Shown one piece after another: positions 1 through 48,738 of a stretch of 64,000 bases of DNA; positions within the stretch are counted from its first letter, which is position 1; each line of letters begins with the position of its first letter. This DNA is from Trichoplax adhaerens (taxonomy: Eukaryota; Animalia; Placozoa), in assembly GCF_000150275.1 (NCBI RefSeq), contig NW_002060943.1, positions 1,292,832 through 1,356,831 on the forward strand, in the 5' to 3' direction. Made by a program: the position numbers and the translations under genes. The notes below the pieces were generated by a model. That model had not been told where the DNA came from. It saw only the letters and a program-made list of their open reading frames with translations, and did not search any database.

Positions 1-3000
1 TTGTAGATGTATAAGAAGTCGACGAGCTTGGAGTTGTATATGTACTAGTCGATGAGTACGGACTAGAGCTGCTTGGAGTCGTGTATATTGAGCTCGATGT
101 CGAATATAGGCTTGTAGATGTATAAGAAGTCGACGAGCTTGGAGTTGTATATGTACTAGTCGACGAGTATGTGCTAGAGCTGCTTGGAGTCGTGTATGTT
201 GAGCTCGAAGTCGAATATAAGCTTGTAGATGTATAAGAAGTCGACGAGCTTGGAGTCGTATATGTACTAGTCGACGAGTACGTACTAGAGCTGCTTGGAG
301 TCGTGTATGTTGAGCTCGAAGTCGAATATAAGCTTGTAGATGTATAAGAAGTCGACGAGCTTGGAGTTGTATATGTACTAGTCGATGAGTACGGACTAGA
401 ACTGCTTGGAGTCGTGTATGTTGAGCTCGAAGTCGAATATAAGCTTGTAGATGTATAAGAAGTCGACGAGCTTGGAGTCGTATACGTACTAGTCGACGAG
501 TACGTACTAGAGGTGCTTGGAGTCGTATATGTTGAGCTCGAAGTCGAGTATAAGCTTGTAGATGTATAAGAAGCCGACGAGCTTGGAGTCGTATATGTAC
601 TAGTCGACGAGTACGTACTAGGGCTGCTTAGAGCCGTGTATGTCGAGCTTGAAGTCGAATATAAGCTTGTAGATGTATAAGAATTCGACGAGCTTGGAGT
701 CATATATGTACTAGTCGACGAGTACGTACTAAAGCTGCTTGGAGTCGCGTATATTGAGCTCGAAGTCGAATATAAGCTTGTAGATGCATAAGAAGTCGAG
801 AAGTACGTACTAGAACTGCTTAGAGTCGTGTATGTTGAGCTCGAAGTCGAATATAAGCTTGTAGATGTATAAGTCGACGAGCTTGGAGTTGTATATGTAC
901 TAGTGGATGAGTACGTACTAGAGCTGCTTGGAGTCGTGTATGTTGAGCTTGATGTCGAATATAAACTTGTAGATGTATAAGAAGTCGACGAGTACGTACT
1001 AGAACTGCTTGGAGTCGTGTATATTGAGCTCGATGTCGAATATAAGCTTGTAGATGTATAAGAAGTCGACGAGCTTGGAGTCGTATATGTACTAGTCGAC
1101 GAGTATGTACTAGAGCTGCTTGGAGTCGTGTATGTTGAGCTCGAAGTCGAATATAAGCTTGTAGATGTATAAGAAGTCGACGAGCTTGGAGTTGTATATG
1201 TACTAGTCGATGAGTACGGACTAGAGCTGCTTGGAGTCGTGTATATTGAGCTCGATGTCGAATATAGGCTTGTAGATGTATAAGAAGTCGACGAGCTTGG
1301 AGTTGTATATGTACTAGTCGACGAGTATGTGCTAGAGCTGCTTGGAGTCGTGTATGTTGAGCTCGAAGTCGAATATAAGCTTGTAGATGTATAAGAAGTC
1401 GACGAGCTTGGAGTCGTATATGTACTAGTCGACGAGTACGTACTAGAGCTGCTTGGAGTCGTGTATGTTGAGCTCGAAGTCGAATATAAGCTTGTAGATG
1501 TATAAGAAGTCGACGAGCTTGGAGTTGTATATGTACTAGTCGATGAGTACGGACTAGAACTGCTTGGAGTCGTGTATGTTGAGCTCGAAGTCGAATATAA
1601 GCTTGTAGATGTATAAGAAGTCGACGAGCTTGGAGTCGTATACGTACTAGTCGACGAGTACGTACTAGAGCTGCTTGAAGTCGTATATGTTGAGCTCGAA
1701 GTCGAATATAAGCTTGTAGATGTATAAGAAGTCGACGAGCTTGGAGTCGTATATGTACTAGTCGACGAGTACGTACTAGAGCTGCTTAGAGTCGTGTATG
1801 TCGAGCTTGATGTCGAATATAAGCTTGTAGATGTATAAGAAGTCGACGAGCTTGGAGTCGTATATTTACTAGTCGATGAGTACGTACTAGAGCTGCTTAG
1901 AGCCGTGTATGTTGAGCTTGATGTCGAATATAAGCTTGTAGATGTATAATAAGTCGACGAGGTAGGAGTCGTATATGTACTAGTCGACAAGTGTGTGCTA
2001 GAGCTGCTTGGAGTCGTGTATGTTGAGCTCGAAGTCGAATATAAGCTTGTAGATGTATAAGAAGTCGACGAGCTTGGAGTCGTATATGTACTAGTCGACG
2101 AGTATGTACTAGAGCTGCTTGGAGTCGTATATGTTGAGCTTGAAGTCGAATATAAGCTTGTAGATGTATAAGAAGTCGACGAGCTTGGAGTCGTATATGT
2201 ACTAGTCGATGAGTACGTACTAGAGCTGCTTGGAGTCGTGTATGTTGAGCTCGAAGTCGAATATAAGCTTGTAGATGTATAAGAAGTCGACGAGCTTGGA
2301 GTTGTATATGTACTAGTCGATGAGTATGTACTAGAACTGCTTGGAGTCGTGTATATTGAGCTCGAAGTCGAATATAAGCTTGTAGATGTATAAGAAGTCG
2401 ACAAGCTTGGAGTCGTATATGTACTAGTCGACGAGTACGTACTAGAACTGCTTGGAGTCGTGTATGTTGAGCTCGAAGTCGAATATAAGCTTGTAGATGT
2501 ATAAGAAGAAGTCGACGAGCTTGGAGTTGTATATGTACTAGTCGACGAGTACGTACTAGAGCTGCTTGGAGTCATGTATGTTGAGCTCGAAGTTGAGCTA
2601 GGAGTCGTATATGTACTAGAACTGCTTGGAGTCGTGTATGTTGAGCTCGAAGTCGAATATAAGCTTGTAGATGTATAAGAAGCCGACGAGCTTAGAGTTG
2701 TATATGTACTAGTTGACGAGTACGCATGAGAGCTGCTTGGAGTCGTGTATGTTGAGCTCGAAGTCGAATGTAAGCTTGCAGATGTATAAGAAGTCGACGA
2801 GCTTAGAGTTGTATATGTACTAGTCGACGAGTACGTACTAGAACTGCTTGGAGTCGTGTATGTTGAGCTCGAAGTCGAATATAAGCTTGTAGATGTATAA
2901 GAAGTCGAAGAGCTTGGAGTTGTATATGTACTAGTCGACGAGCTTGGAGTCGTATATGTACTAGTCGATGAGTACGTACTAGAACTGCTTGGAGTCGTGT

Positions 3001-5500
3001 ATGTAGAGCTCGATATCGAATATAAGCTTGTAGATGTATAAGAAGTAGACAAGCTTGGAGCCGTATATGTACTAGTCGACGAGTACGTACTAGAGCTGCT
3101 TAGAGTCGTGTATGTTGAGCTGGACGTCGAAAATAAGCTTGTAGATGTATAAGAAGTCGACGAGCTTGGAGTTGTATATGTACTAGTCGACAAGTACGTA
3201 CTAGAACTGCTTGGAGTCGTGTATGTTGAGCTTGATGTCGAATATAAGCTTGTAGATGTATAAGAAGTCGACGAGCTTGGAGTTGTATATGTACTAGTTG
3301 ATGAATATGCGCTAGAACTGCTTGGAGTCGTGTATGTTGAGCTTGATGTCGAATATAAGCTTGTAGATGTATAAGAAGTCGACGAGCTAGGAGTCGTATA
3401 TGTACTAGTCGATGAGTATGTGCTAGAACTGCTTGGAGTCGTGTATGTTGAGCTCGAAGTCGAATATAAACTTGTAGATGTATAAGAAGTCGACGAGCTA
3501 GGAGTCGTATATGTACTAGTCGACGAGTACGTACTAGAACTGCTTGGAGTCGTGTATGTTGAGCTCGATGTCGAATATAAGCTTGTAGATGTATAAGAAG
3601 TCGACAAGCTTGGAGTCGTATATGTACTAGTCGACGAGAATGTACTAGAGCTGCTTGGAGTCGTGTATGTTGAGCTTGATGTCGAATATAAGCTTGTAGA
3701 TGTATAAGAAGAAGTCGACGAGCTTAGAGTCATATATGTACTAGTCGACGAGTACGTACTAGAGCTGCTTGGAGTCGTGTATGTTGAGCTCGATGTCGAA
3801 TATAAGCTTGTAGATGTATAAGAAGGCGAAGAGTACGTACTAGAACTGCTTAGAGTCGTGTATGTCGAGCTCGATGTCAAATATAAGCTTGTAGATGTAT
3901 AAGAAGTCGACGAGCTTGGAGTTGTATATGTACTAGAACTGCTTGGAGTCGTGTATGTTGAGCTTAATGTCGAATATAAGCTTGTAGATGTATAAGAAGT
4001 CGACGAGCTAGGAGCCGTATATGTACTAGTCGACGAGTACGTACTAGAACTGCTTGGAGTCGTGTATGTTGAGCTCGAAGTCGAATATAAGCTTGTAGAT
4101 GTATAAGAAGTCGACGAGCTTGGAGTCGTATATGTACTAGTCGACGAGTGCGTACTAGAGCTGCTTGGAGTCGTGTATGTTGAGCTCGAAGTCGAATATA
4201 AGCTTGTAGATGTATAAGAAGTCGACGAGCTTGGAGTCGTATATGTACTAGTCGACAAGTGTGTACTAGAGCTGCTTGGAGTCGTGTATGTTGAGCTCGA
4301 TGTCGAATATAAGCTTGTAGATGTATAAGCAGAAGTCGACGAGCTTGGAGTCGTATATTTACTAGTCGACGAGTATGTACTAGAGCTGCTTGGAGTCGCG
4401 TGTGTTGAGATTGAAGTCGAATATAAGCTTGTAGATGTATAAGAAGTCGACGAGCTTGGAGTTGTATATGTACTAGTCGACGAGTGCGTACTAGAGCTGC
4501 TTGGAGTCGTGTATGTTGAGCTCGATGTCGAATATAAGCTTGTAGATGTATAAGAAGTCGACGAGCTTGGAGTTGTATATGTACTAGTCGATGAGTACGT
4601 GCTAGAACTGCTTGGAGTCGTGTATGTTGAGCTCGAAGTCGAATATAAGCTTGTAGATGTATAAGAAGTCGACGAGCTTGGAGTTGTATATGTACTAGTT
4701 GATGAGTAAGTACTAGAGCTGCTTGGAGTCGTGTATGTTGAGCTCGAAGTCGAATATAAGCTTGTAGATGTATAAGAAGTCGACGAGCTTGGAGTTGTAT
4801 ATGTACTAGTCGACGAGTACGTACTAGAGCTGCTTAGGGTCGTGTATGTTGAGCTTGATGTCGAATATAAGCTTGTAGATGTATAAGAAGTCGACGAGCT
4901 AGGAGCCGTATATGTACTAGTAGACGTGTACGTGCTAGAACTGCTTGGAGTCGTGTATGTTGAGCTCGAAGTCGAATATAAGCTTGTAGATGTATAAGAA
5001 GTCGACGAGCTTGGAGTTGTATATGTGCTAGTCGACGAGTACGTACTAGAGCTGCTTGGAGTCGTGTATGTTGAGCTCGAAGTCGAATATAAGCTTGTAG
5101 ATGTATAAGAAGAAGTCGACGAGCTTGGAGTCGTATATGTACTAGTCGATAAGTGTGTACTAGAACTGCTTGGAGTTGTGTATGTTGAGCTTGAAGTCGA
5201 ATATAAGCTTGTAGATGTATAAGAAGTCGACGAGCTTGGAGTTGTATATGTACTAAACGACGAGTAAGTACTAGAGCTGCTTGGAGTCGTGTATGTTGAG
5301 CTTGATGTCGAATATAAGCTTGTAGATGTATAAGAAGTCGACGAGCTTGGAGTTGTATATGTACTAGTCGACGAGTACGTACTAGAGCTGCTTGGAGTCG
5401 TGTATGTTGAGCTCGAAGTCGAATATAAGCTTGTAGATGTATATGTACTAGTCGATGAGTACGTACTAGAACTGCTTGGAGTCGTGTATGTTGAGCTTGG
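1..5500. repeat. Coding minisatellite, 111-bp unit, about 50 copies
   Basis: ttgtagatgtataagaagtcgacgag recurs at 1, 112, 223 and onward. Some units have 3-bp or 24-bp indels. Confidence 0.97.
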
Positions 5501-5686
5501 TGTTATAGACGTACTAGTTGGAGAAGTGTATGCGGAGCTTGTGGACGGATAAGAAGTCGACGGGCTTGATGTTGCATACATGCTAGTGCTGCTTAGAGTA
5601 GTGAAAGTTAATGATGATGGAGATGCTGTATACGAACTTGCCGAAGAATATACAGACGATGTTGTGATAGACATCACAGATGTGGA
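2..5686 (-). CDS. Large exon of a secreted mucin-like Ser/Thr/Tyr-rich tandem-repeat protein (open at the left window edge and bounded by an N-gap on the right)
   Basis: The minus-strand frame reads STSVMSITTSSVYSSASSYTASPSSLTFTTLSSTSMYATSSPSTSYPSTSSAYTS..., then repeats of LYSTSSSTYTTPSSSSTYSSTSTYTTPSSSTSYTSTS. The codon phase is the same at position 2 and position 5642. The indels inspected between units are multiples of 3, and no in-frame stop was seen in the units checked. The ORF track misses it because it has no stop in the window. Confidence 0.9.
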
Positions 5687-5687
5687 A

Positions 5688-5796
5688 NNNNNNNNNNNNN
5701 NNNNNNNNNNNNNNNNNNNNNNNNNNNNNNNNNNNNNNNNNNNNNNNNNNNNNNNNNNNNNNNNNNNNNNNNNNNNNNNNNNNNNNNNNNNNNNNN
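5688..5796. other. Assembly gap (N run)
   Basis: Run of n characters. The two ORF-track entries spanning it are artefacts. Confidence 0.99.
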
Positions 5797-7434
5797 GTCA
5801 CATACTAATACTAACTGTACTGTACTGTACTAAAATTGTCCTGCAACTCTAATATATTCTTAAATAAAACCATTTTAAACTGTTCTTTAAATGTAGATAC
5901 TTTTATAGCCTTCTTATGGAATCTACAAATATAGGTTGATATGTTTAGTTATTTACACCCCATACAGTCTTCGCCAGTTTTCTATAATTATTTGCTATTA
6001 CATAGCCTATTATGGTAGATGATGTATCTAATTTTGTATCCTAGTTCTTTCCATGTGCTGTGTCTCTAAGGCTATAAACACCAACGACTTCTGCCTCAGA
6101 TTTAGTTAGTTGCAACAGTTGTAGCGTTAGTATTTTTCACTATACTTCATGGCAGCTTACATGCTCCCCAACATTACAGTACTACCAGATCGTAGGTAAC
6201 CACAGTCTACAACATTGTACCTATTTTCTACTGAAATCTTTGAGTGATTCTCTGCATGGCAACTAAGTCTGCTACTGCTGTTGTATCGAGCTCTCCATCA
6301 CGCTACTTTCTATAAATTTGTGTCGATTGTAGATTTATTTTACAACAGGTACGATGGAATAATTCCATTGCATAAAATCCTTTATGTAGGCTCCAAGATA
6401 TGGTACCATATCGATTTTTGTAGAAAATAAATCGAATTTTAAAAATTTTCAAGTAACGTTTTTAACTTTAAACTGTATTTAATTAAGTGGTCTAGATGAT
6501 TACAGCAATTAAAAATCAAATCCTACAAAATATAGATAATTTTCTCGTAATTCGAATATATATTCCTGTAATGGCTACTTACAATTAGCACTAGTATTAC
6601 TATTAACATCGTAAAAATCTATATTCTACCTAGAAATTTTAGTATTATAGTACTGTATACATATAGCGAAACCAGTTCAACGATAAGCATGCACGCTTTA
6701 CCCATTCTACTTTACTATAGTTATTCAACTATTTTACATCGTTATACACGCTAAAACTTTATACGATGTTTTTCTCATGCTCACTGCAATCAAGACAACT
6801 TTTTACTTGGTTATTCTCTGTAATTTCTTACGATTGTAGCGGACAGATAATATCTTGAAACATCACAACGTGCAGTCCATTTAATAATTAAATGAAACAG
6901 CCTATAGCACACTATAAGATATGCAAAATGCATCTCAGTCAATATTTTCTCGATAAATCTATATCCTATATTCTTAATTGAAATCATTCTTAGTCATGGA
7001 TTATTTTAATGGAAAACATACCAAAGGTAATTTTATTTAACCCAGATGATGAAAGTAAACGGTTGTAGAAGTAGGTAATTATATGTAATATAATATGCTA
7101 TGAAATTCAAATAAGGCAAGGAGTATTTCATTAATTAATAAATCTATATCTTATATTTCTTAATTCAAATGATATTGACCTTGACCACTTCTGTTAGAGG
7201 GCTTATTTTGAAGCTAATCTTATTTAATACTGATGGCAAAGACTAACCATGGCGATAACGGAAATTATTAGATGCCGGCGTAAAACTTCAGATTAAGCTG
7301 ACCGCAAAGTTATGTATTCGTTCATTTTTTGAATACATAGATTATATAATTATCGTTCTATACCACGTTAAACAGTTTAAGTTTTGACTACTGTTGGTAA
7401 AAAATTATCTACATTAAAATTTTTTTGTGCTTAC

Positions 7435-10860: not shown

Positions 10861-12534
10861 ATGGCTACTGATTCAATTAATTTACGCCAGCCGTCATCTG
10901 CTACCGAACAAGATAACGATTCCGATTTTAATGATCGAACAAAACTGTTATCTGATAGTCAAGAGATAAACTCAGCGAATGGATCTACCCATCACGAAGG
11001 TGGAAAAAGTAATCGACGATTAACTGTGGATGACATTGCGGAATCACTCAATTGTGGCTTATTCCAGTATTTATGCAATTTTGTCTGTGGATTATGCTTC
11101 ATCGCTGAAGGTCTAATTATCCAATCGATCAGTATTATTGCCATGTCCGCCTGTGATTTAAATATCAACCCCCATAACCGAACATGGCTTAGCATGTCCT
11201 TGCTTATTGGTATCGTTGTCAGTTGTGCATTTTGGGGCCGATTAGGCGATTCCTTTGGTAGGAGGAGAGTGTTGCTATTAGCATTATTTATTAATATTAC
11301 ATTTACGCTTCTGTCAGCATTTTCTTATAATTATCAAATGTTAATTATCATGGCCTTCTTTAACGGATTTGGAACAGGAGGAGTGTTACCTGTAGCCTTA
11401 GCTTATGTTATTGAATTCTTTCCTCGAAAGTATCGAGGTATGGCTGGATTTTCAGCTAATGCATACTGGAGTTTTGGTAATATTTATGCCGCGGTAATGG
11501 CACTTTTAATTATAACTAGATCGATTGCAATTCCTATTGGTAATATTGTTTTGACCGGTTGGCGTATTTTCACAATAGTTTGCGCTATACCTCCGTTGAT
11601 AGCATTAATCAGCTTAGCATTTATGCCGAATAGTCCTCGATTTCTAATTAAGCAAGGCAAACGAGAGAAAACATTAAGTGTAATAAATAGAATACATCGC
11701 ATTAATAGTTACTGTAGCAATAAGCATAGAAATCAATCGTTGCGTATCAAATTAGCAGATTTGCCTACTATGAGTGATATACTAAATGATATTGATAAGG
11801 ATGAAGGTAAAGCTAGCTGTTCATGCTGGTCTCGAATAGTACAATTTATGCGACAATATGCAATCCTTTATTCTTTAAAGTGGCGTAAAAGGACATTATT
11901 AATGACCGCTGTATGGTTTTTATTTTGCCTTTGCACTTACGGATTTTGGCTTTGGTTACCAACCTATTTCTCACTCTATGCTCATGGTCATGGACACAAA
12001 TGTCTCCGCCCTGTTATTTTGAATCGTACACGTTATCACATGAATGTGTTAAATCAATCATTATCATGTATAGAAAACACCCGCAATACAGCTATTTATC
12101 GTAATTTATTTCTAACAACGCTATCAACACTCCTTGCCGAACTTATTTTTATACCTATTATTAATATATCTGGAAGAAAACTATTATTTAGTGGATTAGC
12201 TCTGGCAACGGGTGTAATTATGTTAAGCATTTGGTTAACCAATACATCAACAGGTGTACTCGTATTTTCATGTTTGTTCACTGGTATATCCGGTGCTGCG
12301 TGGCCAGTATTAAATGTATGGACTTCTGAATTGTATCCAACACAACTTCGTTCCACGTCCAATGGCTATCTTAATTTATGGGCTCGAATTGGTGCTATAA
12401 TAGGAACTACCACATTTGGTTTATTATTACAAGTTAGCTGTAAATTACCAATTATTATTGTTGGCATTATATGTTTACTAAGCGCAATTCTTGCTATATT
12501 TTTGCCAGATACGAGTAAAGTAGATATTGACTAG
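10861..12534 (+). CDS. Intronless MFS transporter, SV2/SVOP-like (557 aa)
   Basis: About 12 hydrophobic segments. Motif A GRLGDSFGRRR, EFFPRKYRG, MPNSPRFL and SELYPTQLRS are present. ACDLNI and a Cys/N-glycosylated loop after WLPTYF resemble the SV2 family. Confidence 0.92.
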   Translation: MATDSINLRQPSSATEQDNDSDFNDRTKLLSDSQEINSANGSTHHEGGKSNRRLTVDDIAESLNCGLFQYLCNFVCGLCFIAEGLIIQSISIIAMSACDLNINPHNRTWLSMSLLIGIVVSCAFWGRLGDSFGRRRVLLLALFINITFTLLSAFSYNYQMLIIMAFFNGFGTGGVLPVALAYVIEFFPRKYRGMAGFSANAYWSFGNIYAAVMALLIITRSIAIPIGNIVLTGWRIFTIVCAIPPLIALISLAFMPNSPRFLIKQGKREKTLSVINRIHRINSYCSNKHRNQSLRIKLADLPTMSDILNDIDKDEGKASCSCWSRIVQFMRQYAILYSLKWRKRTLLMTAVWFLFCLCTYGFWLWLPTYFSLYAHGHGHKCLRPVILNRTRYHMNVLNQSLSCIENTRNTAIYRNLFLTTLSTLLAELIFIPIINISGRKLLFSGLALATGVIMLSIWLTNTSTGVLVFSCLFTGISGAAWPVLNVWTSELYPTQLRSTSNGYLNLWARIGAIIGTTTFGLLLQVSCKLPIIIVGIICLLSAILAIFLPDTSKVDID

Positions 12535-20300: not shown

Positions 20301-23300
20301 ATATTGCATTCATTAATTTCTAGTCACAGATAATTTGAAATGTTACAGTAATAAGTTAACGGAATAGAAACTATGTCATTCTCAACCAGAATTGATTCAG
20401 TAATATCTGTCAAAAACCTGTGCAATTTCTGCTATTAGGATGGAGTTTGTAGCCTGCTGAACATTGACAATGAAATCCACCAATGGTATTATTACATATC
20501 ATTTGGCATAAATTATTGTTGGCTGTACATTCGTTAATATCTGTCCAAAATAAAATATTGAACACAATTTAATACTGCTTCAAATTTGTTTATTAATGAT
20601 CTGTTGATAAGTGAAATGTGAAGAAATCGTATAGATTAGCAGTGTTATTTCGAAGTCAACAATACGCAACTCATAGAAATTGTGGAAGCTAAGTAAACTA
20701 TCTTAATAAGTTATAGGTATTATCGATGTTTTGAAAATTTCTGAATTTTCCCTAACCTGCACAACTTTTTCCATCACTTTGTAAAGCGTATCCCTTCCTG
20801 CAAGCACAATAATCAGTTCCATTGCGCTGAACACAAATATGGCTACATGAGTTGGTTCCATTGCATGGAATAGTAACTACGTTGCCAATAAGGTCGATAT
20901 AAAAGAACGAATTTACATTTAGTGTGATATACCTTACGCGTACAGTGCTAAAAAATTGTTCAATAAATCATTTCTGTTTCATTTGATCTAAGATTATGCA
21001 AATTTATAGCACTATATAGAGAATTACTACGATCAAACTATTCATTCTAGGCGTTTTACCCTGTATTACTTATATCGTAGACCATAAATATGGTCATCAA
21101 AATTTTAATAGCTTCAATTTGTATGATTCAAAATTTCTAGTTAGAATAATAAGTAAACGATTACTTGTTATGTATATAGGCTAAATGGTATGATCTGGAT
21201 CTAAAAGACAAACTAATTTTTCGTTGTGATGACCTAGATAGTACTATATTCTAGCTATAATTAATTAGCCATCGTAAATTTTAATTATTTTAATTTTTTT
21301 ATCATACCATTGCAAGTTGAGTTGTCACTACTGAGAGTAAATCCGGGATCGCATGAACACTCGAAAGAACCAGGTAAATTTTGACAATTTTGCGAGCAAG
21401 TTTTTGGATTGAAACATTCATCAATATCTAGATGCAGTCAAAAATATCATATCAGCCTGGAAGGCTTAGCCATAGAAGGAATGACATCAAGGAATAAAAA
21501 TGCAATATCGCATTATCTTAAAAATAAAATTATTTGCAACTACCATCGCAAGCTTTTCCATTGGCGTTTAATCTATATCCGGGCTGGCAATCACAAATAT
21601 AGCTGCGGAAGGTATTGATACAAATTTGTTGGCAAGTATGAGTGGTAGAATTAGCACATTCGTCTATGTCAGTACAAATTCGACCATCTCCTGTAAGACC
21701 CGATGGGCAGCTACCGCATGTAAAGCCAGAAAGTGGCGCCTTATGATCGGTACAAGTAACATTTTCAAAGCATGGAGCTACAGAACAGCTATCGAAATCA
21801 ATGGTACAATGATCACCAGTCCAACCCTCTAGACACCTACATGGAACTTGCGATGCAAAGCCATCATCAACGAATTCAGCGCTAAAAGAAAGGTACAGTA
21901 ATCAACATTTAAATTTATCATTATGCAACCATTGAGCTCTATCCAATTTTAGTGTAGTCCATATCCCATTGCATAAAATCAATAAAGTATTGATATCGGT
22001 TACAAATTTCAATGTTATAGCAAATAGTTACGCTACCTGTAATCACATTGGCCTCCATTAGCACAGTGGCACATAATAACTTGTGCTGGTTGATAAATAC
22101 TAACAGCATCATTAGAATCCTTAGCTACAACTTGGATGCTAAAATTAGTATACTGGGTTACTGTCCATTGAAACTCATTTATTGCTTGATTAAGTGTCGC
22201 ATTATTTGGTAATTTAAGGGCATCAATTATAGTAGTGTCATCAGGATTTCGATCAGTAACGTTAAATATGAATTTTAACGTTTGGCCGAAAGTGACATTG
22301 AGAACAGCTGGTCCAACAATATCGGGTGGGAAATTTTCTATGGAAGCAAACATACAAGAGGTTAGAATAGGATTAAAATTATTATCAGATAAGTTAGTAG
22401 TTTGATACAGTAGAGAAAAGCTGGAAAGAAAATTGATAATCATATTATTGCATGATATCGTCGATAAGTCAATATCAATATTCATCTCATTTCCCACTTT
22501 TGCTCTTTACCTGCTTGTTTTTCAGCTGAATTGAAACTATCGACATTTTCTTTAGCTTGTACAGCCAGTTTGATATCTAACGTTTGACTAGCATCATATA
22601 AACAAGAAAGATCATTGCCACATGCTTGTTGAGCTTGTTGTAGTAATGCAGTGTTATCACCAAACAGTGCAGTAATATTGTCGCTAAAAACAGGCACAAA
22701 TGTTAAGTCAGTAAAATTTGCATGTGTAGTCCCAGGTGGATAGGTAAATAGGGATTGAGATTGACTAATTTGCCCTACAATAGATGGTCAAGAATAAGAA
22801 TATTAGCAGTCCATTGTCAACGATTGTATTAATAAAACTTTCTAGTTTGAAATAATGCTCTGCATGCCTCTATTCGATTTCAAGATTTAAAACATAACAG
22901 GAAATAATATGAGCAACTCATCAACATACATGCTTGTCCAAATTGGTAAAAGATTTGCGATTCTGTTGAATTAATCTCTACTACTGTATCATCAGGACGT
23001 GTAAAATCATCTTCCATATTACCATTCCATACACCCAACAATCCACGCGTTTGACCTCGATAAACTGTTGGAATGTTGACTGCGATATTAATCATACCAA
23101 CTAATGGTGTAACTTCTAAACTAACACCAGAGGAAAAGGCAACAATTAAGCTGCCATTCCTTGATAATGAAAGATCGACATTGTTGTATTCACGTGATAC
23201 GTTAACGCTTAAATTAGTCATGGCTAATGACATAGTACTATTAACAAGGATTGTAAAATTATTCGTTTCAAGGTCAAGTGTGCCTTGGATAATATCGGAG

Positions 23301-26300
23301 CCATTTTGCTTGGCTGAAAAAGCAGTGAAAACAGTTGCACTAGCGGATTGTGTTCCATTAACCAAAGCTCGAGCTGTTCTCGCTTGTACAACCAAGTAAT
23401 TGTTGTTGACATTGACTAAGGTATATTCTCCTAATCCATTAAACGTATATGTTTTTCCATCCAAAGTTTTAATATGAGGATCGCCCGCAAACCAAGCTAT
23501 ACAAGAAAAATACGAATCAAGTTCAACTTCATTCAATTTCAAGAATTCAAAAAAATTTAAAACAGGCGTAATTTCCGATTCAAACTATGTCATTCGCATG
23601 GCTTAAAAAAACAATCAAGTCATTTTCTAAGTTACTATAAGGCTGGAAATGCTTTTCCGATCAAACATAAAATTATAGCTATAACTCAGTAATATTATAG
23701 AATTTCAAAGTCTTAATCATTCCTGGTAGCTAACGTACGTCAATACGTTGATAAAACTGATTGAATAAAATTTTACGTTTTATTACGGACATGGCCAGAG
23801 TTATAAAACATGCTCAATGTGATTTAGAATAGTAAAATTTTAAAGATCTATCAATAGAAAACTAAATTATAGATGTGAAATGGAAAGGTTGAAATCTTAA
23901 AAACTCATTTATTGTAGGATAGGTACACTAGGAACCCTGAAATGCTTACTTCGTCTAGGTGGAATATAGCCTCGGCAACTACCACTCCTTCTTTTACTGT
24001 AATACAATCGGCATAATGGCGATTTTACACAACAGCTCAGATAGGCATCCTGATCAATATTTCGTAACTGTCTATTGGCGTAAGTTAAAGTTCCACCATC
24101 AGGCCAATTCTCGACTAAAGCACCGAAACGATTTCGTTGGAAAGAATAACAGCAGACTCTATGCATCTAATTTTGAATTGAAGGTTTACGGAAGTGGATA
24201 TAAGATATTTATAGTCAATCGATGGCTATCATATGGCTAACATCAGATATTAGAAGTAACCGACTTACCCGCTGTCTACGATCACCTAAGAACGAGCCTA
24301 TGGTTGGAGCTGCAAATCGAGTTTGTGCACATGGAAATCGAGCAACTCTACCCCAAAATGTAAATCGACGATCGAAAAACACCTGGATCCAACTGCACGG
24401 ACATGGTGATTGCATAAAGGAAGTATAGTAATTTAATGGATGCTGATTGAAGAACCAAGCTAAACATTTCTGTGAATGGCTAATGTGGTCACCGGCTGGA
24501 TCCAAGCGGAATGCCCATTGGCCCGTTTTATTCGTATTTCCAACTCTAGAATCAATTAAATATAGCTGTCGGCTGCCAGATCCTGCGATCTCATGATGGA
24601 TAGGTTTGCCAGCACCTTTCGCATAGCCTGTACGAGGCCTTCCATAGAAGTAGAAATAACGTGAGCGGGAATTAATCTTCCACCATTGCATACCTTCGTA
24701 CTCGTAATTCCACAGGGTAAACGTATTTTGGCCATTACTAACCAGAACGAGCTGAAAGGTGTTTGTCTACGATAGTTTTATTAGGATGAAAAGAGAGAAA
24801 TAAATTAAAGCCGTCCGTATCAATTCTAACGAAGAATGAATAATCTGCTGATATTATAAAATTAGACTACGATTTGATATAATTAATGCTACAACTATGC
24901 TTGGAATAAGGTGTGGAACATGATCATTCGACTTTATTTCTAGGAATATTAGCTATGGATAAATTAAGCTGTTTCCATCATATACTTAATAAATGGACTT
25001 ATAAGGGAATTTAGAGCATCTTCGCCCAACTTACAAAGCCGTAACTGTTATAATAATATGGATAGGGTGCTATTTTTGCCCAAGTAATAACGATGACACT
25101 GGTAGCAACAAAGTTAGGCACTTGAGTATGAAAATGACCAAACTCGGCTTCTACTTGTTGTGGGGTATGATTGGCAGCGTAAGCTTTCATCCTTTGCTGA
25201 AATTCATTAACATCTCTTGTTGCTTTATCTAACATAGCTTTAGACTGAGATGTTCTATCGAATGAATAATAGCCATGATAGTAAACTGTTGCATTTTTTG
25301 CTCGGTAATCTGCAGACATAAAGAATGGAGCTAGAAGAGGAAAGTAATAAGTACGAAATCGAGTTGGCCAAAATGTGCACCACTGAAATTTAAATGCAAC
25401 ATAACCATTGGAGCAAATCTGTAAAATGAAATCAGAATTTCAAGTTCAGATTCTAACGGATTATATCCATAATGTGATGGTACCTAGCATTGATAAGCTT
25501 AAATGAACAGGTAATAGGTGTTAATCATGGAGTATCAGTTACTATGACAGAATTAATTTAAGCAATAAACAGGGTAAATTTTGGTTAATACTTAACCTAT
25601 TTCATGATAATGATGAGTTAATTATTAAACTATACAGAAATGATGATTGTAAAGCTTTAGAACTATAACTTGCATCGATATGGAATAGAATTGCTATTAA
25701 TATGCGCTTCGATAGAAGGTAACTCAATCGATTTGTAGAAATAGGTTAAAAATATTTAACTGCTTTGTAAATTTTTCTTATTATAGTAATAATGTTAATG
25801 TAGACCAAATTGTCATTTTATAGATATTACGTTTGCAAATTCCATTTATTTTTTAGCTTTATTCACCGTAACTGCCTTAAGCTATTCTCAGGTTTTACTT
25901 ACTCGAAAGTTATTGTAATATTGATCCAGGAAATAGATTGGTGTTCGTAATTGGAAACGTTGTCCAGGAACAACACTCCAACGCGATTTGTATATCGATG
26001 CGTCTCCTTGAGATTTTCCATACGGATATAGCCTTGGTTCTGAAAAGATAGAGATGATTGCCAATTAATTCTAACCTATCCCAAACTTATATCAATTTTG
26101 TCATAGACATTAATTTACAATATACGAAATAAACTTAACGTGCAATTCTGATCATTCAAAGTATTGCAAAGCAGCACATTAGCCTATCGAAATAATATTC
26201 TATTCCAATTCTATTCCAATTTATTTCTACGACTTACGTCGAACTGGGGTTGGTTGTGGAGTAGTAGCAACTTGAGTCGGTGGAAGTGATATACTCGACA

Positions 26301-37117: not shown

Positions 37118-38941
37118 TTAAATATTGTCATGCGAATATTGCTTATCAGACTTCAAAATAAAATCAATGACATCCCTAGCTAATATATCAGGCTCTTCTA
37201 AAGCAGCAAAATGTCCGCCTCTAAGCATTGTGTTGTAAGTGACTATTTTCTTGTATCTATGAGATAACCAAGATCGCGGCGGTCTGGAAACTTCATTTGG
37301 AAAATCTGCTATACCTGCCGGAATGGATATTGGTACTCTACATAAAAAATAAATTACTTATCAATTCTCGTAATAATAGTAGTATTATAAAAGACATTCT
37401 AAAACAGGAGCATTAATATTTTTAACATAACGAATGGTAGAAGGTCAAAGAATTGCGATGTAAATACCAATACTAGGTTCACCTTTCTAACTCGAAAGTC
37501 TTGCTGTTGAATATGGATTCTTTATAGTAACGGAGGGATGGTACTATTGTTTGTGTTACCCAATAGATCATAACATTTGTTATGAGCTCATCTTTTGTGA
37601 ATTTCTCTTCAATGCAATCAATTTTGCTTGTATTGGAGCATCCAGACCAACGGATAAATTTCTCAATAATATAAGCAGCTAACCCTAATGGTGAATCATG
37701 AAGTGCAAGTCCTAATGTATCAGGTCTGGTGCTGTGTAAGAAAAAGTGCGACATTTCAATGGAATACTCAATAATCCTTTGAAGGAAAGGAAAGACTCGC
37801 TTGCGCTCTTCAGGATCTAATGGAAAACGTCACGTAATTGTTAACTGGAAGCTCGTATGTAGGATGGTACTATAGCTATCACTGAAATATCAATACTGCA
37901 ATCAACAATAAGCAGTGTCCTTATGTAGTGCAGCGTTTGTCATATGAAATTTATAAGCTATCATGTTTATCAAGCTTAAAAATGTAATCTGCCTAATTTG
38001 TATTCAACAATTGATAAGCATAATAGTAAAACAAGATATTACATTCATACCTGGGACAAATAACGACGGAAAAAAGCTGCCTATACTATATGTTAGGATA
38101 GGATTAGGAGCTGTCATAAATACAAAGTTGACGTGCAACCCTTTGCAATGCCTATTTAAAACAGTAAAGGCAATGTTAGTTCCAATGCAACCATGTTTAT
38201 ACTTGTACTATGAATAAGAAACTATGATACCGACTTAGAATCTAATATAGCCATCGCATTGGCAATTGCAGATCCCCAATCACCACCTTGAACATAGTAG
38301 TGATTGTATCCTAATCGTTGCATTAACTGTATGAATATACTAGCTGTTTCAATAGTGCCTAATCCAGATTTTTCTGGAGGACTTGAAAATCCAAAGCCAG
38401 GTATTGACGGAACAATCACAGTGTGATTGGCCTTTACTAATATCGGGATGACTTTGTAAAACTCATAAAATGAGCCCGGCCAGCCGTGTATCATTAAGAT
38501 GACCTTGGTTGACTTTTTGGCCAAATCATCACTGCCAGTTTGATGAATAAAATGGACATTAATTCCTTGTATTCTTGTTTTGTAATGATTAAAGTTGTTT
38601 ATAGTTAGTTCATGATTTCTCCAGTTGTAATGATTTTGCCAATAATTTGCTAGTGATAAAATATAATCTGCATTGGTTCCATAATCCCAATGAGTGTCTT
38701 GCAATGTTGCATAATTTCGAATCCTTTTCAACCTTGTATTTAAATCTCTTATGGCACCTTGACTAATGTTGACTTTAAACGGCTTAATTGTTGTATCATC
38801 TTCAATGGTATGAGATGGACTGTTGGTCCAGCATTGATCATTCTTGATGTACTTGGAAAGATCGACCGTTTGTGATAGGAAATAGTAATATCCGGCAGCA
38901 ATAATAATCACGACTATCGTAGCTATACTATACCCATTCAT
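37118..38941 (-). CDS. EPHX1: Microsomal epoxide hydrolase (4 exons: about 38235-38941, 38050-38152, 37484-37818, 37118-37337)
   Basis: N-terminal membrane anchor, IKPFKV..YW..YNWR N-domain, HGWPGSFYEF, GGDWG nucleophile, TRPDTLGLALHDSPLGLAAYIIEKF, FPNE and GGHFAALEEP. Confidence 0.92.
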
Positions 38942-39951
38942 TTGCAAGCAGATTATCTAACAATTACACATGATTACCCTGAAGAAGAACCATTTGATAG
39001 CATTAATATTAAGTATATCTCTGTTCAACAATCAATATACCTGTCTAAGGATAATCTCGTCGAAGCATTGCTGTATACACTACAGTATACAGTCAGTACA
39101 GTATGTCTAGTCATTGACTACAGTAGTACATGTTGTAGTTTACAAAACATAGTAATGTAATCGTGCCATGCTTAATATTTGTAAGTCAGGATATATCAAT
39201 CAATTATATTATCGTCAAAACATACTGGATTTCGATGCACTTTGCGAGGAAATAAATAAATTGTTGTTGATGACTGGTATGATTGGCAGAATCTCCCAAC
39301 GAATAACAGCAAAGTACGATCGCATACAGAACTCACACGAATAGAATCGGCAGTCTAGTCATGCAGTCGACTGGTAAGCGGTATATCGAACTACTGCAAT
39401 TTGCTCTTTGTAACAGAATGGAGCAAAAGTTGGCTCTACTTGGTACTAGATAAATCTGTAAATAGTGTCTTGAGTAGTCAAGTACCTACCTGATTAATAA
39501 AGGAGTAGCGGATTTACTACTGGATAAATAAACAAGATGTGCAACATGATTACTAGAGACCTCTAATTCAGGGTCTCTTATGATTACAGTACTACAGTAA
39601 ATCATACTCACACTGTTTGGGTGTTTTTGTCGAGCAGTCCAGTTGTCCGTATTCGGACTCAATCCATTCCCATACAAAGACTGCTAGTGACACGGTGTTC
39701 AAATGACGCATTGTTCTACGTACCACGTGAGAAGTGGAGCGTAATGGAGGCATGATGGATCATGCGCCAAGAAAACGCTTGTACCAGAACGTTGACGCAA
39801 CGAAGGCAATTTTTTGATTGGCTGAAGTAAAAAAGATTGCTAGATTCTTGACCTACTACACGCATAGGGGGTAAAATGGAATGAAAGCAGGTCGTTGTTT
39901 TGCCTTCGGCTTGGCTTTTGCCACTGCATCGAGTCTATTCTAAAATGGATG

Positions 39952-40076
39952 CGACCGCAATGGCAATCACCACACGACGATCGAAAAGGATCAATACTTG
40001 CTGTACGTGCATCCTGCGCAAAAGCAGTACACCACGGGTCCAAATTTAAGGATTAAAAAAGGCTTGATCGTCAAGG
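39952..40076. promoter_or_regulatory. Distal cluster of the CGAYCGMAA(A/T)GG motif, a partial duplicate of the proximal metallothionein promoter
   Basis: CGACCGCAATGG (39952), CGATCGAAAAGG (39978) and TGATCGTCAAGG (40065). The stretch 39952-40001 aligns with 40572-40617. Confidence 0.55.
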
Positions 40077-40550
40077 ACAGCACACTCACAGCTTCAAATG
40101 ACTGCCACGGCCCACCGATATTCTTCCATGTCTACACAGGCATTTGTTGAAGCGATCAAAGTTGATTGAATACCATGTCTTAAGTTCACTAGAGCTAAGA
40201 GAACACTTTACACTTTATTATAGAAGGTATTGGGCGCATATTTTGCTGGACAATGATGCTGATAAAGATGTAGGTTAAATCAATACAGATCCGTCCATTT
40301 TACGCTTGCTGGTGATACAGTACTACTGTCACAGTCATGTTGAATCATACTGTACTGTGCGGTGCTGCTTAGCTTGCATTGCATGATGGTTCGTTCATTC
40401 ATTGCATTACATCAGTGCATTGTATGTACTGTACTGTACTAGTGTACTGTATACCATCCCCTTAAAATGAAAGCACTGACTGCAATGTTTATTTTGATAT
40501 TGACGGCTTCTCTTTTTAGACGTACGTGATACAATAATGGTGCCATTTTG

Positions 40551-40631
40551 CGATCGCAAAGGATTAATGAACGACCGCAAGGCACTACACTACGATCGAA
40601 AAGGATCAACGTTTGCTGAAAAAGTATAAAA
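40551..40631 (+). promoter_or_regulatory. Proximal metallothionein promoter: three motif copies spaced 21 bp apart plus a TATA box
   Basis: CGATCGCAAAGG (40551), CGACCGCAAGG (40572), CGATCGAAAAGG (40593) and TATAAAA (40625-40631), about 130 bp upstream of the ATG. Confidence 0.7.
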
Positions 40632-40761
40632 GTGCTACCAACGCTTGTTCAGTATACTTTTTTTTTTCCGATCCTTCACTGTTGCTGTTCACGTCGTCGG
40701 CGTTCCGTTAAAATTTCTACCGATCAATTTCCATTCCTTTGCGTTACAATTTCTAACTTCA

Positions 40762-42604
40762 ATGGATCCTCCTTGTAATTGTGCTGAAAGTAAGTACAGT
40801 AGCATGTATCTCATTCTAGCGATAATGTATAAAATATTATATAGTATAGAGTATATCCAACTTTTTCAAGCGTTAAAAAAAATAAAAATGGTAGTATATT
40901 ATCTCAAGAAGGAAATGTGTTTATCCATTTTTTTCTCTCGTCTTTATCATAAATCACTGTTAATATGAAAAAGGGAAATACAACTTGGGCCAATTTTGAA
41001 AATGTCTAGTTTGAATATTTCGGCGAAAATTCTTTCCATTTTAACGCCATATCCTCTAGTACATTTTGAAGTTGGTTTACTTGACTATTTTTTTGTGCGC
41101 CGTAATACAGTTCAATACTGTACGTTATAACGACTATAACCATGGTATAACTATAACCGTAACCAGGGACTTCTACAATCTACAGTACAGTAGACAAGTC
41201 CCCCATACAGTATTGTACTGTACTGTACACTACTGTACACTACGCACTACAGTGTTTACTCACTGTACTGTACTGTACACTGTACCTGTATAGCGCGGTA
41301 TCAAACGTTACGCGAGTCGTTAGGTTTAATAAATAAATAAAAAAATTAACTATAAATAAATAATAAAATTTCATTTAATTGAATTTAAAATATTTATTTA
41401 AAACAAGGCTAGTTGAAGGATGGAAAAAATTATTCCAGTCAGTCCAAAACTACTGTACTGTATAAATAAAAAAATGAACTAGAAATAATAATTAATTGAA
41501 TTGAATTGAAAAAATTTAAAATTTAAAAACAACGCTGGTTGACGGATGGACAGAAAATAGTCCAGTCTGTCTCAAAACACTGCTACTACTATACTGTACT
41601 GTATATATAAAAAAAAAATGAACTATATAAATAATAATTTAATGGGCTTCAATTTAATTAAAAAAATTAATTTAAAAACAAAGCTACTTGACGGATGGAC
41701 AGAAAATATTCCAGTCTGTTCGAAAACACTCCTACTATACCGTATAAATAGAAAAAAATGAACTTTAAATAATAAAATTGAATTGAATTGAAAAAATTTA
41801 AAAACAAGGCTAGTTGATGGATGGACAGAAAATATTCCAGTCTGTCTAAAAAGCACTCCTACTATATCGTATAAATAAAAGAAAAAATGAACTATAAATA
41901 ATAAAATTGAATTGAATTGAAAAATTTAAAACAAGGCTAGTTGATGAATGGACAGAAAATATTCCAGTCAGTCCAAAAATACCGCTACTATACTGTACTG
42001 TACTCGTAATACACTAGTTTCGAATCAACGTTTTTACTTAGAATACTTTCTTTCTTCATTCCTCAGCTGGTGACTGCCAATGTCCTTCTAACTGTGCCTG
42101 CACCAATTGTAAATGCGCACCTAACTGCAGACTCTGTGGTGGGAAAACATGCAAATGCGCTGGTTAGTATTACATAATAGATGGCGCACGTACGCGTATA
42201 TTTAAAAATTTGTTGTTATACTACATTAATTCAAATGCTGTCTTATTCAATTAAAATAATAAACAAATTATAAGATTTATTGAATGACGTTTAATGTACA
42301 GTACTGTAGTTGTACTGATAATAGGTTATACTTTATGCTTATGATGCAGTAAAGTTATTCCCATATTGCACTGTGAGTACTGTACGGTAGATATATTATT
42401 AATCGTAGTATTTATAGCAAACTGACAGTGATAACTCTACCTATGAATGATTCATAACTTCGACGTTTAACTGCAATCGAAGTTGCAGGATAAGGAATTA
42501 ACTGTAAGCAACTTTACTTCATCTTTCTAGAAAATATCAGTAGCTGCGTCTGCACAACTTGCATATGTACTGATTGCAAGTGTCCTAAAGGATGCAAGAA
42601 CTAA
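40762..42604 (+). CDS. Metallothionein, 65 aa, 19 Cys (exons 40762-40789, 42067-42162, 42531-42604)
   Basis: The spliced product is MDPPCNCAETGDCQCPSNCACTNCKCAPNCRLCGGKTCKCAENISSCVCTTCICTDCKCPKGCKN*. Both introns are GT-AG phase 1, and 28+96+74=198 nt. It has eight CxC pairs and no aromatic residues or His. The N-terminus resembles mollusc-type DPCNCxETGxCxC. Confidence 0.92.
41330..42003. repeat. Intronic tandem repeat, about 125-150 bp x5, in metallothionein intron 1
   Basis: The core aaggctagttgayggatggacagaaaatattccagtctgtc recurs near 41405, 41531, 41681, 41806 and 41933, separated by homologous AT-rich spacers. Confidence 0.9.
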
Positions 42605-47522: not shown

Positions 47523-48738
47523 CTAAGTAAGTCGCCCACACTTTCTATATTCTGCCAGTAAAGCATCACATTCTTGAATAACAAACGACAGCGTCTTTTG
47601 AGAATAGAAATTTGGAAATAATTCCAAATTTTCAATTACATCTTCCAAGAGATGGGCTCTTCCAACGACCGATCCAGGGGCTTCGTACTTGACATGTGTA
47701 AAATGAACATGGAAATGATAATATGATGGCTGATAGTGGATGTAAATTCGCAATTGTGATTGATTCACACCATACTTTTCTTTAATCGCGGCCTAAATAA
47801 AGTTTAACAACATATTTGTTATCATTTAAACTTTAGCATTCTAAGGAATGCAACCGCTGGCTATGAAGTTACTAATTCAATATTAGTATCGTAATTGATA
47901 CTGCACCATACAATTTTTGTAAAGGTCTACTATAAGCAATGGAATTTAATAGTGATACATCCTCCATACTATGCAAACTTACAATTCCTTGGTTTCGAAT
48001 ATTACGTAATAATGGTAGATCGGAGCTAGTTAGATCTCTTAATGAGCGTAAGCCGTGACGATGACAAATTGCAACCAAGTATAAATCGCTTAGTTGCTTT
48101 TTATCCCATTTAAGATCAGGCAATAAGATAAATCCTGTGTCACGATCTGGATCTTCAAATATTATGTTTTCGCTTTCACTCTCGTGTTTGAGTATTCTTT
48201 CCACCCACTGATACGATCGATGAAATGTAAAATTGGAAGAAAACAAATTTATACACATGACATTCATCCGTTACTGCATGGAAATGAAGTACAGAAACTG
48301 CAACGTAATACAAAAGTCAAAATTTAGACGAAAAGGTAAAATTACCTGAGCGCTAAACGCGTTCTTTTCGATAAACGGCAAAGTGATATTACGATAATCA
48401 TTAGGTGTTTCTTGTAGGAGATAAAACTGATGATCACTGTACTTGTTGATGTGCTTTTCGGTAGCCGGGTAAATGACAGTCGATTTTAAAAGATTTAATT
48501 CAGCTTTAGGGGTCAAGCTATACTGACTATAAATATCGTTTTCAAGCTGGACTTGAGCCAAGGTATCTTCAGATATAATATTTTGCATGAGATCTTTTGT
48601 AAAGGGTGGTTTACTGATTAATAATATTACATCACCATCACGATCTTTGAATTTAGCAAGGATATTGATGGATTTGCTAGCAGGATTTTCAGCTAGGATT
48701 CTGCTGATTTGAATATCTTTCAAGTTGACTAAAGGCAT
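47523..48738 (-). CDS. DCPS: m7GpppX diphosphatase, scavenger decapping enzyme (exons about 48346-48738, 47983-48207, 47523-47792)
   Basis: [41 protein letters not shown], the HIT motif [13 protein letters not shown] and [13 protein letters not shown]. Confidence 0.95.

Follow-up and report, generated by a model that had tools for sequence, protein, structure and literature searches.

Specialists have called the evolution of metallothioneins a 'black hole', since these proteins are short, change fast and, in a common view, have arisen repeatedly. Among described domains, those closest to the gene presented here are the beta2 domain of solenogastre molluscs, [CxC]x5[CxC]x3[CxC]x2-4[CxC]x3-4C (PMC7826182), the beta domain of vertebrates, [CxC]x5[CxC]x3[CxC]x2[CxC]x2C (PMC8476144), and the D1a domain of arthropods, [CxC]x4[CxC]x3[CxC]x2[CxC]x2C (PMC13168519). 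A 2014 review of animal metallothioneins begins at nematodes and mentions neither sponges nor cnidarians. Annotation of a coral genome found no metallothionein gene (PMC3750612), and a 2023 sea-anemone genome paper reported no common metallothionein in that or other cnidarian genomes (PMC10588955). Arthropod surveys of 2026 proposed a pre-bilaterian origin for the nine-cysteine [CxC]4-C domain, citing no non-bilaterian sequence. Here we describe a putative metallothionein gene of the placozoan Trichoplax adhaerens, located at positions 40762-42604 of a 64,000-nucleotide (nt) stretch of RefSeq assembly GCF_000150275.1 (contig NW_002060943.1, positions 1,292,832 to 1,356,831 of the forward strand). 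This whole stretch is referred to as the window, and all coordinates are given within it.

Direct reading and exon-wise translation gave three exons and two GT-AG introns of phase 1, which join into a 198-nt frame for 65 amino acid residues, 19 of them cysteines (Cys). A spliced frame of this length with this Cys pattern had been proposed in an earlier sequence-only reading of the window and was confirmed exactly. Coding exon 1 (40762..40789; this and all other parts of the gene lie on the plus strand) comprises 28 nt, that is nine codons and one base; it encodes MDPPCNCAE and the first base of Thr10, and ends at the donor AA/GTAAGT (a slash marks the splice junction). Intron 1 (40790..42066, 1277 nt, phase 1) is followed by coding exon 2 (42067..42162, 96 nt), which is symmetric, with phase 1 on both sides, and carries 10 Cys; it spans residues 10-42, the two outermost in part, and is flanked by a long polypyrimidine tract with a CAG acceptor at its 5' side and by a GTTAGT donor at its 3' side. 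Intron 2 (42163..42530, 368 nt, phase 1) runs from GTTAGT to TTTCTAG and provides a polypyrimidine tract and TAG acceptor for coding exon 3 (42531..42604), whose 74 nt include the TAA stop and specify residues 42-65 with 7 Cys. The split codons read A/CT (Thr10) at intron 1 and G/AA (Glu42) at intron 2. A TATA box, TATAAAAG, was read directly at 40625..40632 on the plus strand, 137 nt upstream of the ATG. Transcription would be expected to start at about 40655-40660, from where the sequence is free of ATG as far as 40762, and the ATG at 40762 is the first after the TATA box.

TGY triplets make up 3.1% of codons over the six frames of the window, as against 10 Cys in the 31 codons of exon 2 and 7 in the 23 codons of exon 3, and among all stop-free stretches in the six frames of these 64 kb the two exons rank first and second in Cys density. 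A six-frame scan of the window found no other Cys-rich exon nearby able to replace any of the three. Since the Cys density is so high, no further Cys-rich exon lies near and the exons follow the ATG in splice-compatible phase, the three-exon model is complete and chance is excluded as its source. We conclude that the gene is real and very probably a functional metallothionein, predicted to be transcribed and spliced as modelled.

Genome-wide searches covered 105,631,681 bases in 1414 contigs. In searches for paralogues, exons 2 and 3 matched only themselves, and the gene is thus present in single copy. A scan of the genome with a degenerate CxC pattern hit for the most part poly-Q or Thr/Ala-rich repeats read on their opposite strand; one candidate, on inspection, was a poly-Q stretch of a receptor-like open reading frame (ORF). 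Much of the 1277 nt of intron 1 consists of a tandem array at 41329-41997, with about five units of 127-150 nt each, 77-90% alike; the repeat unit has no match elsewhere in the genome and is locus-specific. Runs of ACTGT/ACAGT-type pentamers (TACTGTACTGTAC...) were also observed, in intron 1 at 41206-41281 as well as at 39070-39110 and 40400-40450.

Every metallothionein trait that can be read from DNA sequence is present in the predicted product. Its Cys residues occupy positions 5, 7, 13, 15, 19, 21, 24, 26, 30, 33, 38, 40, 47, 49, 52, 54, 57, 59 and 63, forming eight CxC motifs and three single Cys in the pattern [CxC]x5[CxC]x3[CxC]x2[CxC]x3C-x2-C-x4-[CxC]x6[CxC]x2[CxC]x2[CxC]x3C. They amount to 29% of the 65 residues, in agreement with the metallothionein range of 15-35% Cys and a mass under about 10 kDa. 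Phe, Tyr, Trp and His are all absent. The N-terminus, MDPPCNCAE, is not a signal peptide and the chain is free of hydrophobic stretches, as expected of a cytosolic protein. It is by its Cys content, its CxC motifs, its lack of aromatics and His and its lack of a signal peptide that the earlier assignment of the gene to the metallothionein type is supported. Lys and Asn occur six times each, a balance which gives no pointer to metal preference. The start of the peptide may resemble a motif, CNCxETG, that the earlier reading ascribed to mollusc metallothioneins; no such N-terminal motif turned up in the papers and supplements searched. As to domains, the sequence may be divided into 9+1+9 Cys, into 8+11 or, following the exons, into 12+7.

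The same reading had called this layout atypical, a description that is not supported. The layout is archetypal instead, its N-terminal half fitting the mollusc beta2 pattern and differing by a single residue from that of the vertebrate beta domain (PMC7826182, PMC8476144). With [CxC]x5[CxC]x3[CxC]x2[CxC]x3C, this half falls exactly within the solenogastre range, a comparison which, like all those with molluscs made here, concerns Cys patterns and size. With the vertebrate beta domain the agreement extends to residue numbers. Cys 5, 7, 13, 15, 19, 21, 24 and 26 are placed identically, in ungapped register with the mouse MT-1 beta domain (1DFT), whereas the ninth Cys stands at 30 in Trichoplax and at 29 in vertebrates, the last spacer being x3 instead of x2. 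1DFT was the sole metallothionein among the PDB matches of exon 2, which aligned residues 11-27 with residues 11-27, 11 of the 17 being identical. Over residues 4-27 of mouse MT-1, again without a gap, 13 of 24 positions are identical, among them 5 of the 16 non-Cys positions (31%), with a HMMER E value of only 8.9; the field's homology floor for non-Cys similarity between metallothioneins lies at about 25-30% (PMC8476144). The two proteins differ in that the Trichoplax product lacks the CC and CCxCC motifs of the vertebrate alpha domain.

Gene structure offers a comparison of another kind. In cetacean Mt1 and Mt2 the coding exons measure 28, 66 and 92 nt (PMC10224346, Table 3). The Trichoplax gene likewise has three coding exons, and its first intron, as in mammalian Mt1/Mt2, follows 28 coding nt in phase 1 at the same place in the Cys register. 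It differs from the mammalian genes in its middle exon (96 nt against 66) and in the position of the second intron, at codon 41 1/3 instead of 31 1/3. A survey of echinoderm and chordate metallothioneins found every coding-region intron to be of phase 1, with two per gene except in an ascidian (PMC5412396); the two phase-1 introns of the 28/96/74-nt Trichoplax gene agree with this deuterostome arrangement. The agreement of protein register, intron position and intron phase is the strongest reason to prefer common descent to convergence. It is suggestive and not conclusive, because it concerns a single intron position and introns are prone to sit in particular sequence contexts.

Comparison of the two halves of the product with each other revealed that they are related beyond their Cys. 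The exon 2 and exon 3 peptides align by BLASTP with E 6e-4 in the expected register (residues 7-21 with 8-22, sharing C-CT-CKC), which bears out the earlier proposal of two similar nine-Cys halves related by duplication. In addition, the end of exon 2 (CKCA and the split Glu) echoes the end of exon 1 (CNCAE), and both introns follow, in phase 1, a CxCA(E) motif. Exon 2 can accordingly be described as a last-exon-like part, a seven-residue junction (RLCGGKT) and a first-exon-like part. The route to this structure may have started from a two-exon gene with nine Cys, in which one tandem duplication took in the later part of exon 1, the intron and the whole of the last exon. The copy of the last exon would then have been fused to that of the first exon, creating the middle exon, which indeed looks like such a fusion.

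With its 96 nt bounded by phase-1 introns at either end, exon 2 could be skipped without loss of the frame, to yield a peptide of 33 residues with nine Cys. In amphioxus MT2 a symmetric exon 2 is usually skipped and the internal exon corresponds to one repeat (PMC3419175, PMC8476144), whereas the Cys pattern of that protein, CCx2Cx2Cx3Cx[CxC]xCC, is unrelated to that of Trichoplax. For Trichoplax we infer from the phases that skipping could take place.

Taken as a whole, the locus is probably a single-copy placozoan metallothionein gene whose N-terminal half is homologous to bilaterian domains, whose intron after 28 coding nt has been kept and whose two halves originated by duplication. The spliced mRNA would be translated into a cytosolic peptide of 65 residues, the 19 Cys thiolates of which would wrap d10 ions (Zn2+, Cd2+, Cu+) in metal-thiolate clusters. 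Likeliest are two M(II)3-Cys9 clusters holding about six divalent ions, one in each of two halves of the beta2/D1a type ([CxC]4-C); the single Cys of the linker would be left over. Such a protein might serve in zinc and copper buffering and in cadmium detoxification. Its N-terminal half would be homologous to the mollusc beta2, arthropod D1a and vertebrate beta domains, and the phase-1 intron after 28 coding nt would be ancestral and retained. The nearest named language-model clusters are metallothionein families, with scores of 0.80-0.83; these are leads only.

Several results weigh against this interpretation. Homology searches were made with single-exon peptides (exon 2, 31 residues; exon 3, 23 residues), queries from which, being short and rich in Cys, little power can be expected. 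Pfam gave no match to either peptide at E up to 10, and a six-frame search of the genome with PF00131 (Metallothio, the vertebrate-type family) gave none, though here the controls were silent too, so that the result is uninformative. With the low-power 31-residue query, phmmer found nothing at E up to 0.001 among 1.84 billion representatives, and a word search using the open frame of 41 codons that surrounds exon 2, under a length filter admitting 65-residue proteins, returned no candidate. The 1DFT match, at E 8.9, is not significant alone. De novo and convergent origin of metallothionein domains is held to be frequent, and identity of pattern alone is no proof of descent (PMC13168519, PMC8476144). 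As regards the duplication, the positions of introns 1 and 2 with respect to the CxC motif differ by one codon, and their sequences show no residual similarity (12 shuffles out of 200 scored as high as the true pair); since the introns are no longer alike, the duplication would have to be old. Upstream of the gene, finally, neither of two known kinds of control element stands out. The core of the metal-response element (MRE), TGCRCNC, occurs 13 times in the window where 23.8 are expected and is not enriched, and no core of the antioxidant-response element (ARE) was found upstream of the gene. Besides these results, exon 3 found no match in PDB, and a back-translated 14-residue pattern none in a metagenome collection.

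Three other explanations have to be considered. The gene might be a working metallothionein unrelated to those of bilaterians, which arose independently and converged on [CxC]4-C; the layout would then recur on account of folding well round three divalent ions, and the 28-nt exon and phase-1 introns would be coincidental. The literature deems de novo and convergent domains common and a short peptide with sufficient Cys enough for their emergence (PMC13168519, PMC8476144), single exons gave no significant match to any metallothionein, and the reported lack of a common metallothionein in cnidarian genomes (PMC10588955, PMC3750612) leaves a phylogenetic gap. What tells against independent origin is the number of features it has to produce at once: eight Cys numbered as in the vertebrate beta domain, together with identity at 5 of the 16 non-Cys positions of residues 4-27 in ungapped register, an N-terminal half exactly inside the mollusc beta2 range, a first exon of 28 nt with its phase as in mammals and two phase-1 introns as in deuterostomes. 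Convergence would have to arrive at both the register of the protein and the structure of the gene, and we regard it as unlikely.

A second explanation denies that the model is a live gene, making it an unexpressed relic or three pieces which are not spliced together. It would account for the finding that no annotated protein containing exon 2 was detected in large protein collections, perhaps without this genome's own records; small, intron-split metallothionein genes are, on the other hand, commonly missed by gene finders, their coding parts being tiny and their introns long (PMC5412396). A relic would hardly preserve a 198-nt frame intact over three exons with good donors, acceptors and polypyrimidine tracts, nor a TATA box with no intervening upstream ATG, and there is no other Cys-rich exon nearby to take the place of one of the three. 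A dead gene is accordingly very improbable. Least credible of all is that the Cys-rich product is no metal-thiolate protein and acts instead as, for example, a disulfide-rich secreted toxin, an antimicrobial or a structural peptide. In PDB, exon 2 does score best against disulfide-rich modules, LDL-receptor class A and Dumpy (E 0.55-1), but these matches are not significant and do not align the Cys pattern. The peptide, beginning MDPPCNC, possesses neither a signal peptide nor a hydrophobic stretch, its Cys count of 19 is odd, and in being dominated by CxC and devoid of aromatics it resembles metallothioneins and differs from knottin- or EGF-type folds. We give this possibility almost no credit.

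In the upstream region we detected a motif, CGAYCGMAAWGG, which has four matches in the window where 0.3 are expected, all of them upstream of the metallothionein gene and arranged in two clusters. The distal one, a motif pair extended to ...GGATCAA (39952..40003, plus strand), lies about 760-810 nt upstream of the ATG and is a candidate cis-regulatory element. The proximal cluster (40549..40609, plus strand) is situated 15-75 nt upstream of the TATA box and has copies at about 40551, 40572 and 40593, spaced by 21 nt; the copy at about 40572 is a fifth, weaker one, read by eye. The copy at 40549-40558 is a 10-nt palindrome (TGCGATCGCA). In its longer form the motif reads CGAYCGMAAWGG(ATYAA), and within the 105.6-Mb genome the exact 17-nt form occurs only at this locus. 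The two clusters are further linked by a 36-nt direct repeat (39968-40003 with 40583-40618). The motif array is thus real and locus-unique, and may be regulatory. Compared with vertebrate metallothionein promoters, the Trichoplax upstream region has no canonical MRE cluster such as marks metallothionein genes regulated by MTF-1, the sole MRE core within 1 kb upstream being at 40232-40238 on the minus strand. The locus-unique, non-MRE array with its 21-nt spacing may drive the gene as a new metal-response element. Because the promoter is without a canonical MRE array, a different metal-sensing route in early animals is possible.

The neighbours of the gene are ordinary animal genes. An epoxide hydrolase (EHN and alpha/beta hydrolase; 38222-38947, minus strand) is transcribed away from the metallothionein gene, and because of this orientation the two may share their intergenic region. 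Farther off are the scavenger decapping enzyme DcpS, divided between two neighbouring ORFs (47872-48738, minus strand), a VWD-domain exon (22880-23542, minus strand) and a single-exon SV2-like MFS transporter of 557 residues (10861-12534, plus strand), whose nearest Atlas clusters come from molluscs, chordates and arthropods alike. At the beginning of the window, in positions 1-6000, GC skew is strong (+0.34 to +0.38) and the G+C content (39-43%) exceeds that of the rest.

The gene adds a member to a known family, in a phylum for which the literature searched describes no metallothionein. Among open-access papers naming metallothionein together with Trichoplax or placozoa, none describes a placozoan metallothionein, so that the check for an existing description, on which the novelty of the gene had been made to depend, came out in its favour as far as such papers go. 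The sequence-only reading had further held that the gene would be informative for the origin of animal metallothioneins if its host were a non-bilaterian, and the host is a placozoan. Cys register and intron structure suggest that the core domain of the family is older than bilaterians. Whether the gene is moreover a true orthologue of the bilaterian beta2/D1a/beta metallothioneins, with the ancestral phase-1 intron after 28 coding nt kept, is a stricter claim, which we put forward tentatively and rate at somewhat short of an even chance. If it is true, the core domain and its gene structure predate the split between Placozoa and Bilateria, and loss in cnidarians, or divergence there beyond recognition, is implied.

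The gene offers an outgroup sequence for rooting metallothionein domains, as a concrete and testable object, together with an intron-position marker able to separate homology from convergence. Its two-copy architecture is simple, and origin by a single internal duplication appears still readable in it. For work on metal stress in Trichoplax it could serve as a practical marker.

Among bilaterian proteins of two domains, those of molluscs and arthropods allow the whole product to be compared. The beta2/beta1 metallothioneins of molluscs (solenogastre, scaphopod) have 65-66 residues with 18-19 Cys, to which the 65 residues and 19 Cys of Trichoplax are comparable (PMC7826182). In bivalve beta2/beta2 metallothioneins, such as Crassostrea MTIII, the second domain is beta2-like too, and the Cx2Cx4[CxC] segment of Trichoplax (C30, C33) resembles the start of such a second domain (PMC7826182). 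The C-terminal half, [CxC]x6[CxC]x2[CxC]x2[CxC]x3C, differs from the beta1 domain of nearly all mollusc metallothioneins, [CxC]2-C-[CxC]2; it is also of the [CxC]4-C type and neither beta1 nor D1b ([CxC]2-C-[CxC]2). Arthropod MT1 proteins built from D1a domains (D1a/D1b in pycnogonids, D1a+D1a+t-D1a in horseshoe crabs; PMC13168519, PMC12800444) share with the Trichoplax product nine-Cys [CxC]4-C domains and a homotypic arrangement produced by tandem duplication of that domain. From D1a the Trichoplax spacers differ in two places (x5/x3/x2/x3 against x4/x3/x2/x2), and the Trichoplax protein has no D1b and carries one extra Cys in the linker. Bidomain arthropod metallothioneins bind about six divalent ions, and NgraMT1, a pycnogonid MT1 with 9+9 Cys, was found to bind 6 Zn or 6 Cd in electrospray ionization mass spectrometry (PMC13168519).

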